The notes under the pieces: generated by a model
Databases searched by the model: none
Seen by the model: only the letters and a program-made list of their open reading frames with translations
What the model was told of the DNA's origin: nothing
Part shown: positions 45,916-55,753 of the stretch, piece after piece
Position numbering within the stretch: position 1 is the first letter of the stretch
Layout: the number at the start of each line of letters is the position of its first letter
Program-made: the position numbers and the translations under genes
Assembly (NCBI GenBank): GCA_965153285.1
Contig: OZ229110.1
Strand: one strand, 5' to 3'
DNA from: Podarcis tiliguerta
Taxonomy: Eukaryota
Length of the DNA: 64,000 nucleotides

Positions 45916-46151
45916 NNNNNNNNNNNNNNNNNNNNNNNNNNNNNNNNNNNNNNNNNNNNNNNNNNNNNNNNNNNNNNNNNNNNNNNNNNNNNNNNNNNNN
46001 NNNNNNNNNNNNNNNNNNNNNNNNNNNNNNNNNNNNNNNNNNNNNNNNNNNNNNNNNNNNNNNNNNNNNNNNNNNNNNNNNNNNNNNNNNNNNNNNNNNN
46101 NNNNNNNNNNNNNNNNNNNNNNNNNNNNNNNNNNNNNNNNNNNNNNNNNNN
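45916..46151. other. N run (236 nt), assembly gap or masked sequence
   Basis: Direct reading. Confidence 0.99.
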
Positions 46152-49044: not shown

Positions 49045-49272
49045 NNNNNNNNNNNNNNNNNNNNNNNNNNNNNNNNNNNNNNNNNNNNNNNNNNNNNNNN
49101 NNNNNNNNNNNNNNNNNNNNNNNNNNNNNNNNNNNNNNNNNNNNNNNNNNNNNNNNNNNNNNNNNNNNNNNNNNNNNNNNNNNNNNNNNNNNNNNNNNNN
49201 NNNNNNNNNNNNNNNNNNNNNNNNNNNNNNNNNNNNNNNNNNNNNNNNNNNNNNNNNNNNNNNNNNNNNNNN
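49045..49272. other. N run (228 nt), assembly gap or masked sequence
   Basis: Direct reading. Confidence 0.99.
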
Positions 49273-49466: not shown

Positions 49467-49614
49467 NNNNNNNNNNNNNNNNNNNNNNNNNNNNNNNNNN
49501 NNNNNNNNNNNNNNNNNNNNNNNNNNNNNNNNNNNNNNNNNNNNNNNNNNNNNNNNNNNNNNNNNNNNNNNNNNNNNNNNNNNNNNNNNNNNNNNNNNNN
49601 NNNNNNNNNNNNNN
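49467..49614. other. N run (148 nt), assembly gap or masked sequence
   Basis: Direct reading. Confidence 0.99.

Positions 49615-50585: not shown

Positions 50586-50616
<31 letters not shown>
50586..50616. repeat. (TA)n, left flank of the PLE insertion
   Basis: Direct reading. Confidence 0.95.
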
Positions 50617-50618
<2 letters not shown>

Positions 50619-50693
50619 TTTCGTAGATTTTCACGGGTACAGGAATGCAGGTTTTGGTGTCCTCGGGTGTCTTCCCGTGTAAAAGTTGGGGTG

Positions 50694-50741
50694 TCTAGGC
50701 GACGTTTCGACGAGGTCTCACTCGTCATCTTCAGGCTGGTG
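50694..50741 (-). ncRNA. Mirror copy of the hammerhead ribozyme motif
   Basis: Exact reverse complement of 53165-53212 (gacgtttcgacgaggtctcactcgtcatcttcag at 50701-50734). Confidence 0.75.
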
Positions 50742-51769
50742 CTTTCGGCTTCTTGTTACTGGAACAGAGCAGGATCTCAGTGTTTGAGTTCCTATAAATA
50801 CTGTTGAGGAGGTGTGGTGTATAGCCTCCAATGTTCTGGGCAGAGAGGAGGTTCCCAGGCTAGTGTGCCTTTTCTTCTTTTGTTCCTTAATTACTTGAGG
50901 GATATCTTGAGTGATTTCTTGAGTGATTTCCTGAATCCCACTTAGGTGGGTCATTAGGTGTGGATTAGTTGCTAAAGCCTTCGTGTCTTGAACTCTTGAA
51001 CTTTGTGAAGAGTTTTTCTGAGAAGATGGCTGTACTGCACTTGGTTGTGCTCTGGCTTGGCTTCGTGTATAGGGGCGAGCTGTGGTTTTGTGGCCTGTGC
51101 CAGCCAGATCTGTGTAGGGATTGCAGGGGGGTGCAGCATCCGGAGGTGCCACCCTGGTTTGGCTACTGGATGGTGTCTGTAATTTATCTGTGGAGAGGGT
51201 CTGGGTTTGGGTCTGGTGTGGTTGATTGGTGATGGCGTTCTGTGTGCCTCTGGATCTGGTGTCAGATTTTGTGGGGAGGGCTAATTTCCAGATGTCTGGC
51301 AAGCGGGATGTGTCGTCACGCTTGTTCATGTTGTGAGGGTGTTTCTCTATCTCGATGGCTTCCATGATTATTCTCTTGTGGTGATGTTCCATGTTAAAGA
51401 GCAATTTGGAATCTGCAAAATTAATTTCGTGTCCTGTTTCTTTCATGTGTTGGAAAAGAGAGGAAGTTTTTTCTTCTTTTTTGACGGCATTCTTGTGTTC
51501 TGCGATCCGTGCATTTATTCGTCTGTTTGTTTGTCCAATGTACGTGGCTGGGCAGACTTTGCAGGGTATTTCATAGACCCCTTGGTTTTCCAACTGAATT
51601 TTATCCTTGGGGTTTCTGAGGATATTGGCTATTTTTTGGTTGGTGCAAAAGGCTGTTTTGATATTGTGTTTATGGAGGATTTTGCTAATTTTATCTGTAG
51701 TGCCCTTGATATAAGGAAGGAGGGCTATGCCATTGTTTTCTTCTGTGTCTTGGTTTTTGGGGGGTGTTT
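50718..51769 (-). CDS. Inverted, more heavily truncated copy of the same PLE ORF (linker, GIY-YIG, tail)
   Basis: The ORF-track peptide 50718..51593(-) is identical to the C-terminal part of the plus-strand ORF. Confidence 0.88.
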
Positions 51770-51781
51770 TGGGGGGTGTTT

Positions 51782-53188
51782 CCAGAAAAACTGGATAGCT
51801 TCCTCACACATCTCAACAGCCTACACCCCAAAATACAATTCACTATGGAAATAGAAGCCAACAACCAACTTCCCTTCCTTGACGTCCTAATCTACAAAAA
51901 ACCTGATGGCTCCCTAGGACACACTATCTACCGGAAAAAAACACACACCAACCGCTACTTACATGCACAATCACACCACCACCCTGCACAAATAAACTCC
52001 GTAGCCAAGACTCTCATCTCCAGAACCAAACGCCTGGCTGACGAAGACCACTTGACAACTGAGTTACAGAATCTCTCAAATGTGTTAATTGCCAATGGAT
52101 ACCAGCAAAACAGGGTTACGAAGCTAATCCAAAAAGAAACACCCCCCAAAAACCAAGACACAGAAGAAAACAATGGCATAGCCCTCCTTCCTTATATCAA
52201 GGGCACTACAGATAAAATTAGCAAAATCCTCCATAAACACAATATCAAAACAGCCTTTTGCACCAACCAAAAAATAGCCAATATCCTCAGAAACCCCAAG
52301 GATAAAATTCAGTTGGAAAACCAAGGGGTCTATGAAATACCCTGCAAAGTCTGCCCAGCCACGTACATTGGACAAACAAACAGACGAATAAATGCACGGA
52401 TCGCAGAACACAAGAATGCCGTCAAAAAAGAAGAAAAAACTTCCTCTCTTTTCCAACACATGAAAGAAACAGGACACGAAATTAATTTTGCAGATTCCAA
52501 ATTGCTCTTTAACATGGAACATCACCACAAGAGAATAATCATGGAAGCCATCGAGATAGAGAAACACCCTCACAACATGAACAAGCGTGACGACACATCC
52601 CGCTTGCCAGACATCTGGAAATTAGCCCTCCCCACAAAATCTGACACCAGATCCAGAGGCACACAGAACGCCATCACCAATCAACCACACCAGACCCAAA
52701 CCCAGACCCTCTCCACAGATAAATTACAGACACCATCCAGTAGCCAAACCAGGGTGGCACCTCCGGATGCTGCACCCCCCTGCAATCCCTACACAGATCT
52801 GGCTGGCACAGGCCACAAAACCACAGCTCGCCCCTATACACGAAGCCAAGCCAGAGCACAACCAAGTGCAGTACAGCCATCTTCTCAGAAAAACTCTTCA
52901 CAAAGTTCAAGAGTTCAAGACACGAAGGCTTTAGCAACTAATCCACACCTAATGACCCACCTAAGTGGGATTCAGGAAATCACTCAAGAAATCACTCAAG
53001 ATATCCCTCAAGTAATTAAGGAACAAAAGAAGAAAAGGCACACTAGCCTGGGAACCTCCTCTCTGCCCAGAACATTGGAGGCTATACACCACACCTCCTC
53101 AACAGTATTTATAGGAACTCAAACACTGAGATCCTGCTCTGTTCCAGTAACAAGAAGCCGAAAGCACCAGCCTGAAGATGACGAGTGA
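51782..53188 (+). CDS. 5'-truncated PLE ORF: end of RT and thumb, GIY-YIG endonuclease, low-complexity C-terminal tail
   Basis: Open frame with FLTHLNSLHPKIQFTMEIE..LPFLDVLI..YRKKTHTNRYL (PLE RT motifs downstream of YxDD), GVYEIPCKVCPATYIGQT (GIY-YIG with CxxC), R-I-x-EH and EAIEI. No YxDD and no genuine ATG start. Confidence 0.9.
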   Translation, partial: PEKLDSFLTHLNSLHPKIQFTMEIEANNQLPFLDVLIYKKPDGSLGHTIYRKKTHTNRYLHAQSHHHPAQINSVAKTLISRTKRLADEDHLTTELQNLSNVLIANGYQQNRVTKLIQKETPPKNQDTEENNGIALLPYIKGTTDKISKILHKHNIKTAFCTNQKIANILRNPKDKIQLENQGVYEIPCKVCPATYIGQTNRRINARIAEHKNAVKKEEKTSSLFQHMKETGHEINFADSKLLFNMEHHHKRIIMEAIEIEKHPHNMNKRDDTSRLPDIWKLALPTKSDTRSRGTQNAITNQPHQTQTQTLSTDKLQTPSSSQTRVAPPDAAPPCNPYTDLAGTGHKTTARPYTRSQARAQPSAVQPSSQKNSSQSSRVQDTKALATNPHLMTHLSGIQEITQEITQDIPQVIKEQKKKRHTSLGTSSLPRTLEAIHHTSSTVFIGTQTLRSCSVPVTRSRKHQPEDDE

Positions 53189-53212
53189 GACCTCGTCGAA
53201 ACGTCGCCTAGA
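53165..53212 (+). ncRNA. Minimal type-I hammerhead ribozyme motif in the PLE terminal repeat
   Basis: CTGAAGA core 53172-53178, extra T, helix II GACGAG/CTCGTC (53180-85/53192-97) with a 6-nt loop, GAAA 53198-53201, palindromic ACGT helix III, GTC cleavage triplet ending 53205. Helix I pairing is weak. Confidence 0.75.
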
Positions 53213-53256
53213 CACCCCAACTTTTACACGGGAAGACACCCGAGGACACCAAAACC

Positions 53257-53260
<4 letters not shown>

Positions 53261-53287
<27 letters not shown>
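53261..53287. repeat. (TA)n, right flank of the PLE insertion
   Basis: Direct reading. Confidence 0.95.
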
Positions 53288-55753
53288 TCTGCACAGCTGA
53301 CTTCCATCTATTAGTGTGCATTACAGCTCATCCCCCCAAAATAGATTCTAGTGGCCAGAAGCACTTGACTTAACATTGTTACTAATCAGCATGTCCAAGC
53401 ACGTGTTTGTCGCTGCCTGAAAACGGGGCTGGAGGGGCTGGGTGAGTTGGGTTTGGCTCATGTGTGCTCTGCCAATGTGCACAGGGGTCAGGAACGGAAC
53501 CCCTGCACAAAATGGTCACCACCTGTACTCTATGGGTCAGCGTAGGACCTCTATATCCTGGTACTTTATCCATTTTCCCTTCTCCTTTCGGTACTGTCCC
53601 ATTCCACCTGATAAAACTTGACATGACAATTTCTCTTCATCTCTCTCTCCCCTCTTTCCTTCCATTGCTCAGCACATTCTTGGAAAGCTATAGGAAACCT
53701 CTCCCTTTTGGTATTTGGAGGGCTTTGGAAAGTTACCCGACCTTCCCATTATGTTGAAGTACTCTCTCTTCTGCTATTAAAAGCATGGTATGGTCAAAAC
53801 CTAACACTTTGTGAATGGAACAGTGGGCAGTCTGCCTGCTTTGTATATTTAGAGCATGCTGTATGCTTTAATGACATCCTTAGGAGGAGGACTCAGTTTC
53901 TGTAATAAGCCTGGTGTAATAAGCACTATAACTCAGACTAATTTAATATCAAATGAAATCATTTCACAAGAAATGGCCCATATATATGAGTAGAAAATCG
54001 GACAAAAAGCCCTCATGAGATCTGTGCCAGAGCTTTAACTTCAATATTTTCCTTGCATTACACATTTTCTTGACATCTTGAGTGTTGGTTTCCAAAAGTT
54101 TTCATATGAAATATTTATTTTATGTAGTGCTTACCACCTAACATTCTTATGTCTATGCTTTCTCATGCTCTCCGCAGGTGTCTGGGCCTTTCTTTCTCTT
54201 GTTATAGTCATCTTGTGTTTGAACTAGACAACCAAGCAATTTCTTTCAGGCTCAAATTGCTCTTTAACCGAGGAGGCCATTCTAGCAATTATTGCAGGAG
54301 AGACTTTGTTACTGTAGCTCCTGCTAGATACTTTGTGGTCATTAATTCCCACCTGTCCTATGACACTGAGTGATCTGCTGACACTCAATCTTTCTTTTAC
54401 TACCTACACAAAATGTTTTAAACTCACAGCATTTTGCCCTCTGACATCAAGGTTTTACCCATAGTCTTATAATTTCCTGGGTTGATTAAAGTGCAACACT
54501 TTTTCTGTGGCTTCTGAGTAAACTATGATTGAAAGCATAATTAGTTCAGAATACAGCTGTTCCCGTTTCAATTTACGGGTGCCCTTTTGCCCATATTCCT
54601 GGCGCTGCATACATCAAAAAGGAAGATAATTTATTTTAAGGTTTTGCCAATGGTATACCTTACATATCAACTTTGTGAATAGCGGGTTAGCAATTCCAGC
54701 ATGTTACTGAAATAGTTTCTCTGTGCCTCTTACTGTTGAATAGTGCATTAGTAGCTTATACTAAGACTGCTAAATCCTTGATATACTTAGGTACAGTATT
54801 CTAGAGATTTCAGCCCATGGAGGATCACAGCTTGGAAAGCAGACAAGTATGGAAAACAATTAAAAACAACAACAGCCAAGAAGTCAGTTTTGACTAAAGA
54901 AAAAACAACCACAATAAAACCACCATCTCTATAGGCTTCTGTTTCTCTTTATAGTTGAGTTTTTGCATTTACGGTAAACATAAAAGTAATTTTCCTATCC
55001 CAACACTGGAATTAGCTGCACAATAATTTAAAGCTTTTTCTGTCTTTCCTCTAAAATTTGAAAGATATCCACAAGTGGATATAGGGATACTGGATAGGTA
55101 GAGAGCTAATTAATGTTTCTCTCATGACAACTGTGCTTCTGTTATTGTGTTAATGTGTTTTGCTTCAGTTGTCATCTAATTTCCATATAAAAGTTTTAGA
55201 AGTTTCTTCTATATTCAATTGATGCATTTGACACCCAGAAATAAGCACTTTGTTTTCTCATAGGAACGCATTAAATGGAACTAACACAGGAGAATCTTGA
55301 TAAGTCTTAATGTGACTGTGAGCCAGCAATGTGATGAGGCTACAAAGGAGGCAAAAGCTATTCCACAGTGAGATGTGAGAACTTCCAGTAGGGTTAGGGA
55401 AACATAGTCTATAAGAAATGGGTAATGTGTATTTCTCTTCATGTTTCTGGCACATATCTATTATATTGCCTATTATCCCAAATAATAACAGAAGCAGCTT
55501 GCCTTGTGGGGTGGAGCTGCAAGGCTAGCTTCCTGGCAGGTGTGTCACTGCCTCTTACCAAGAGGGAAAGAGCGAGGTGTGATGTGTGGTGCAGGTGAAG
55601 TAGTTGGGTAAAACGAATACTCCTGTTGCACTTGCACTACACTTATCTTCCCTTCGCCTCGCCCCCTACTTCCAGGTCAGCAGTGGCAGCACACCTGCCA
55701 GAAAGCTAGTGTTGTGATTCTGTCCCATCAGAACCACCTCTGTGTTTTGAATA

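Follow-up and report, generated by a model that had tools for sequence, protein, structure and literature searches.

The window (the whole 64-kb stretch of DNA analyzed) contains an insertion in which two copies of one mobile element, a Penelope-like element (PLE), lie head-to-head between two (TA)n runs, with the following features:

50586-50616, no strand assigned: left (TA)n run of 31 nt, immediately next to the 3' end of the left copy.
50617-50644, minus strand: tail, 28 nt of extra PLE sequence present in the left copy only and corresponding to +85 to +112 after the AUG.
50645-51769, minus strand: left arm, a 5'-truncated PLE copy comprising the linker, GIY-YIG endonuclease, C-terminal extension, putative hammerhead and first 84 nt of the next ORF.
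50701-50734, minus strand: putative minimal hammerhead of the left copy, mirroring 53172-53205 as the identity of the arms dictates.
51770-51784, no strand assigned: head-to-head junction of 15 nt, made up of a 12-nt direct repeat plus CCA.
51785-52136, plus strand: further 5' sequence found in the right copy, the longer of the two, from the C-terminal region of the reverse transcriptase (RT), starting at the equivalent of E319 in the Podarcis muralis gene model P0001.
52137-53261, plus strand: right arm, in which the PLE segment of the left arm recurs, ending at +83/84 without the tail.
52325-52620, plus strand: GIY-YIG endonuclease region (GVYEIPCKVCPATYIGQT...), aligning with the endonuclease of PAc (Anolis Poseidon).
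53172-53205, plus strand: putative minimal type-I hammerhead motif, CUGAAGA-U-GACGAG(UGAGAC)CUCGUC-GAAAC-GUC.
53260/53262-53287, no strand assigned: right (TA)n run, directly following the 3' end of the right copy.

The two arms (50645-51769 and 52137-53261, separated by 367 nt) form an inverted repeat of 1125 nt with 100% complementarity, as found concordantly by a repeat finder and an exact string test, and neither arm can be extended at either end. This bears out the initial annotation, which had placed an inverted repeat of 1124 bp at 50646-51769 and 52137-53260; the two figures differ by a single A/T base at the edge of the TA run, which may be counted on either side. A perfect inverted repeat of 1.1 kb cannot have arisen by chance. 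Also as first described, both copies are 5'-truncated and meet head-to-head, TA runs adjoin both outward-facing 3' ends, and the left arm is the longer at its outer end: an extension of about 29 nt to 50617 had been claimed, and 28 nt (29 with the ambiguous base) were measured, with none on the right. For the supposed 367-bp spacer, the distance was correct, but the segment is not foreign DNA. Based on protein alignment and on contigs from other copies of the family, 352 nt of it (51785-52136) are further 5' coding sequence of the right copy, leaving a junction of 15 nt. The first 12 of these (51770-51781) duplicate, in direct orientation, the 12 nt with which the left arm ends (TGGGGGGTGTTT), and the final three (CCA) match neither copy. 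Just upstream of 51785, the loose ends of contigs reveal a family consensus that departs from the locus sequence: contigs from other copies run on with ...TGGCCACACGGGAAG, encoding WPHGK. Self-BLAST of the 64-kb window found no other copies of the element. The flanks outside the TA runs are unique and unlike each other, and the right flank does not recur in inverted form on the left. The window runs on for ~10 kb and ~50 kb on either side of the insertion, with N runs 1 kb to the left. The insertion is intronic.

Judged by its sequence, the element is a Penelope/Poseidon-type PLE that encodes part of an RT and an endonuclease of the GIY-YIG type and has a putative minimal hammerhead. The C-terminal part of the PLE protein is encoded by an ORF on the plus strand (51764-53188) and again by its mirror image. 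From 51785 onward, the translation is 93% identical over 415 aa to P0001 (residues 319-733), an alignment that begins right after the YVDD...WPHGK motif, and 44% identical over 281 aa to Anolis carolinensis Poseidon (P0141, residues 519-798), with the GIY-YIG region included. Together with a Pfam match to GIY-YIG, which is weak (E = 5e-4; 20.7 bits, under the 22.6-bit cut-off), these similarities support the original reading of the element as a PLE with this type of endonuclease. The relatives carry RVT_1 and YVDD; the copy at the locus retains only the portion of the RT downstream of YVDD. The RT catalytic core is absent because of the 5' truncation, and both copies were therefore dead on arrival. 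In the translation, the CX2-5CxxC linker is absent upstream of the endonuclease, with one cysteine in the 60 residues before GVY. Absence of this linker sets Penelope/Poseidon apart from Neptune and Nematis (PMC8557442), and this criterion places the element in the Penelope/Poseidon clade. As in a pseudo-LTR, the terminal region (hammerhead and ORF start) is present on both arms, here inverted; a direct pseudo-LTR is absent because the locus holds no full-length unit. When the 3' end of the element was compared with metagenomes, a single match was obtained, a chance similarity in a gene for a bacterial membrane protein. An origin as a DNA transposon bearing terminal inverted repeats was also rejected.

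The motif at 53172-53205 is a putative hammerhead and has the hallmarks described for the minimal hammerheads of PLEs: a G10.1-C11.1 pair, a long helix II, palindromic 15.2/16.2 and no helix III (PMC4209133). RNA folding recovers the 6-bp helix II, with just 2 bp in helix I. Rfam scans of 4 kb (E≤1) and of 133 nt (E≤10) gave no hammerhead family, which we attribute to the models, since minimal PLE hammerheads lack helix III, and do not count against the motif. The AUG of the element, at 53178, overlaps core position A9 of the motif and opens the frame MTSETSSKRRLDTPTFTREDTRGHQNLH..., while the stop codon of the upstream ORF falls in loop II. PAc and the lizard element are alike in having the AUG at the start of hammerhead stem II.

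With this AUG as the reference, the right copy terminates at +83/84 and the left one at +112, positions that can be read directly at the locus. On the minus strand, the left copy runs through ...CCTGCA(T) into 28 more nucleotides and then the 31-nt TA run, whereas the right copy passes from ...CCTGCA(T) straight into the TA run that reaches 53287. The tail keeps the N-terminal frame open (…HSCTRENLRK-H), and in a multiple alignment its peptide SCTRENLRK(H) lines up with …DSGHESLRQH of PAc and …NTRENL of another PLE, just ahead of the conserved LYGE motif. The 37-aa N-terminal peptide by itself gave no significant BLASTP alignment with PAc, and this placement came from the multiple alignment of PLE N-termini alone. 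On this alignment, the 28 nt of the tail derive from the element, not from the target. Purified PAc nicks and extends both strands of AT-rich DNA in vitro (Frangieh et al. 2024, PMC11167929). The same study reports that the enzyme prefers AT-rich DNA and starts reverse transcription at two adjacent internal sites on the RNA, the main one lying 111-118 nt into the ORF, and that the tail of genomic PAc copies (about nt 85-119) is the sequence between the two start sites (PMC11167929). The termini at the present locus, +83/84 and +112, coincide with the positions of these two sites, in agreement with the earlier proposal that the two ends of a break primed at different template positions. Since the tail on the left belongs to the element but is missing from the right copy, the left arm cannot have been copied from the right one, and each arm must have had its own initiation. 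Priming at both ends of a break is thus well supported by the match of the outer ends to the start sites and tail of PAc and by the ability of that enzyme to extend both strands.

The two flanking TA runs are the sole (TA)≥6 runs in the 64-kb window, which has an overall A+T content of 60%, and there is no TA between the two copies. As both outer ends of the insertion are 3' ends, the locus alone does not distinguish (TA)n as the target from (TA)n added at initiation, nor can a target-site duplication or the pre-insertion state be read there. A preference for AT-rich or microsatellite DNA has been described for PLEs (PMC8557442, PMC3846280, PMC11167929), and contigs of this family from other loci also end in (TA)n. 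The possible (TA)n targeting raised in the initial annotation therefore draws on the family and the literature, and not on this insertion by itself. It is less likely that the TA runs were made at initiation by the telomerase-related RT instead of being the target.

We surveyed the family in contigs from four sequencing runs representing three organisms. The survey skipped TA runs as repeats and applied a filter that makes holes in coverage, such as that at the left flank, meaningless. Thousands of contig pieces from the family were recovered in the runs, and 2533 of 3524 pieces in X15 were at least 99% alike. Contigs that end at the proximal terminus and continue as pure (TA)n numbered 16, 6, 17 and 15 across the four runs, and a TA run also stands ahead of at least one 5' junction of the family. 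In more than 130 contig joints, an antisense copy meets a sense copy at some other breakpoint; these suggest many other head-to-head insertions of the family, even if their shorter sides measure just 22-29 nt. At the present locus, the right flank was found in all four runs, with 100% matches in X15; among the contigs listed from the four runs, searched with TA runs skipped, none bridges 51769/51770 or reaches across one of the outer junctions.

With no differences over 2 x 1125 nt and an assumed rate of ~1e-9 substitutions per site per year, the insertion is roughly less than 1 Myr old, an age that gene conversion between the arms could make too low. Across lacertid genomes, the family looks to be both young and abundant. 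The initial annotation had gone further in calling it currently active. Recent movement is indeed suggested by the identical arms and by the thousands of contigs at least 99% alike, making current activity a reasonable reading, but a second protein search (query P0001) found no intact full-length lacertid ORF of the family.

Taken together, the locus is probably the product of one very recent, dead-on-arrival PLE insertion into a (TA)n microsatellite, in which both ends were primed and the two cDNAs were joined head-to-head. In this scenario the GIY-YIG endonuclease would cleave the TA tract on both strands, and reverse transcription of element RNA would be primed from each of the exposed 3'-OH ends. 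Initiation at the left end would use the distal internal site (+112), giving rise to the 28-nt tail, and initiation at the right end would use the proximal site (+83/84), giving none. The cDNA on the right would extend to RT codon ~319 (1477 nt), and that on the left would halt after 1153 nt. Finally, the 3' ends of the cDNAs may have been joined head-to-head via a template jump of the RT, which would leave three untemplated nucleotides before a slip at an A/C-run (AAACACCCCCCAAAAA) that recopied 12 nt. Cutting of both strands, the use of two start sites and the preference for AT are carried over from the published biochemistry of a relative that is 44% identical and would have to apply to the lizard element as well; that there was a single event, and that the cDNAs were joined in this manner, we infer from the structure of the locus.

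Several other origins would leave an inverted repeat. In snap-back self-priming, a single target-primed cDNA folds back and copies itself, a model that has been published for head-to-head PLE inverted repeats (Arkhipova et al. 2013, PMC3846280) and that would account both for arms that are 100% identical and for a slippage-type duplication in the junction. However, the left arm carries 28 nt of real element sequence that are missing from the right copy and hence were not copied from there, the left flank beyond the TA run is unique and not the inverted right flank, and the junction has no palindrome, with 352 nt of one-sided sequence in its place. We therefore consider self-priming quite unlikely here. 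The same one-sided features bear on whether the structure was created during assembly, through a false join or a long read that was chimeric or folded back, or arose from a later inverted duplication of one copy at the DNA level. Tandem and inverted PLE structures are known to trouble assembly (PMC8557442), N runs lie close by on the left, and the contigs listed from the four runs do not confirm the junctions. Against this, neither mirrored flanks nor a contig end at the fold was found, and the 352-nt segment and the tail are each confined to one side; the flanks are distinct and unique, with the right one recovered from every run; and the copies share no same-orientation overlap able to cause a false join. 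Moreover, neither an artifact nor a duplication would reproduce the asymmetry predicted by two published, biochemically mapped RT start sites, and such an origin is very unlikely.

Two independent insertions of the same family into one TA tract, at different times and in opposite orientations, are conceivable in so far as the family is very abundant and regularly ends beside (TA)n, so that a tract might be hit again. Yet the truncated 5' ends abut through 15 nt of non-TA junction with no leftover TA between them, and no differences have accumulated over 1125 nt, making this history highly improbable. Twin priming of the L1 type, in which one RNA is primed both at its 3' end and internally to yield an inversion, likewise produces inverted 5'-truncated retrocopies with both DNA ends serving as primers. 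In the L1 twin-priming inversions reportedly described by Ostertag and Kazazian in 2001, the second DNA end of the break is said to prime as well, giving rise to inverted segments. There, the second priming is internal and the product joins non-overlapping parts of the RNA with a single 3' end; here, both primings took place at dedicated 3' initiation sites, so that the arms duplicate each other, each containing the same 3'-terminal 1125 nt and ending at an initiation site of the element. We exclude this mechanism, the chance that it formed the locus being next to nil.

Among characterized elements, PAc (Arkhipova 2006; PMC11167929) offers the closest comparison for a double-ended insertion of this kind. 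Like PAc, the lizard element has an RT followed by a C-terminal GIY-YIG endonuclease without a Zn-finger linker, two 3' termini about 28-34 nt apart (~+85 and +112-118 after the AUG) and AT-rich flanks, and the nicking and extension of both strands by PAc in vitro would explain double-ended insertions. In contrast, protein identity is 44% over the C-terminal part of the RT and the endonuclease, and the lizard family has a low-complexity C-terminal extension of ~190 aa, as a result of which its ORF runs into the hammerhead. The tail is 28 nt in the lizard family versus about 34 in PAc, and the flanks are pure (TA)n versus AT-rich/ATT. More generally, 5'-truncated copies inverted head-to-head, a tail of ~30-40 nt confined to one end and a hammerhead in the terminal repeat are hallmarks of PLEs, and AT-rich or microsatellite targets hide their target-site duplications (PMC8557442, PMC3846280). 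The general statement that PLEs often show inverted partial repeats thus accords with a literature in which head-to-head copies are typical. The present locus shares with generic EN+ PLEs the 5' truncation, an inverted head-to-head copy, a tail at one end, a microsatellite site and the hammerhead (Evgen'ev & Arkhipova 2005; Arkhipova 2006; PMC3846280; PMC8557442). It differs from them in arrangement: generic EN+ PLEs usually have a full-length unit with direct pseudo-LTRs and a short inverted pseudo-LTR, whereas the locus consists of two long truncated copies (1153 and 1477 nt).

If double-ended priming is taken one step further, the head-to-head palindromes of this genome may be a regular product of a dimeric PLE particle that cuts dyad-symmetric (TA)n on both strands, with two RTs moving in convoy on one RNA from starts 28 nt apart. 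We put this forward as a speculative extension that is rather unlikely to hold. In that case, the tail-bearing cDNA from the distal start could never overtake the cDNA from the proximal start. Here, the arm with the tail falls 352 nt short of the other, as a convoy would lead one to expect. If the tail-bearing arm were always the shorter genome-wide, these insertions would offer a readable trace, formed in vivo, of the second half of PLE integration.

Both the architecture and the mechanism have already been published for PLEs; what is new is the lacertid family and one insertion. This insertion is an unusually clean natural specimen, with no full-length unit, no decay and each of the published RT start sites used once. 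Their use once each provides in vivo support for the both-strand priming observed in vitro with a lizard PLE and, for this locus, argues against the older self-priming model of PLE inverted repeats. For the host, a perfect 1.1-kb inverted repeat in an intron could form a hairpin or add to instability. Because the family looks young and abundant, a survey of its junctions could reveal how the two cDNAs are joined.

Downstream of the endonuclease, the open reading frame of the Penelope-like element (PLE) adds a low-complexity C-terminal extension of ~190 amino acids, and its end overlaps the hammerhead and the start of the next PLE unit, whose ATG lies 8 nt upstream of the stop codon in a different frame:

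53178–53180, plus strand: ATG of the next PLE unit, overlapping hammerhead core position A9
53186–53188, plus strand: TGA stop of the PLE reading frame, within hammerhead loop II, ending the C-terminal extension

Only two (TA)n runs of at least six units occur in the 64-kb window (1–64000), both flanking the PLE, and TA microsatellites therefore look rare there unless tied to the element. The 5 kb to the left of the PLE contain three N runs:

45916–46151: N run
49045–49272: N run
49467–49614: N run

On the right, the flank at 53658–53888 is represented by two haplotypes in sequencing run X15, one identical to the window and the other carrying 12 substitutions, along with 4 gaps, over 227 nt; the variants of this second haplotype are also present in run X1 from the same organism. 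The right-flank locus is therefore highly heterozygous; the PLE insertion could be polymorphic. Closer to the element, 53484–53527 is a short multi-copy repeat, at which contig depth spikes and the contigs of all four runs compared break with divergent loose ends.

A metagenome scan with the element's 19-nt 3' end returned a single match (L001, 1850–1868), a chance match within a bacterial membrane-protein gene that has no relation to the PLE. In protein searches, the lacertid PLE family showed 82% identity to a Vipera latastei protein, 59–62% to Logan/ENA contigs and 50–58% to many insect PLE proteins, but just 44–47% to Poseidon of Anolis carolinensis. Deep paralogous lineages might account for this pattern, as might horizontal transfer.
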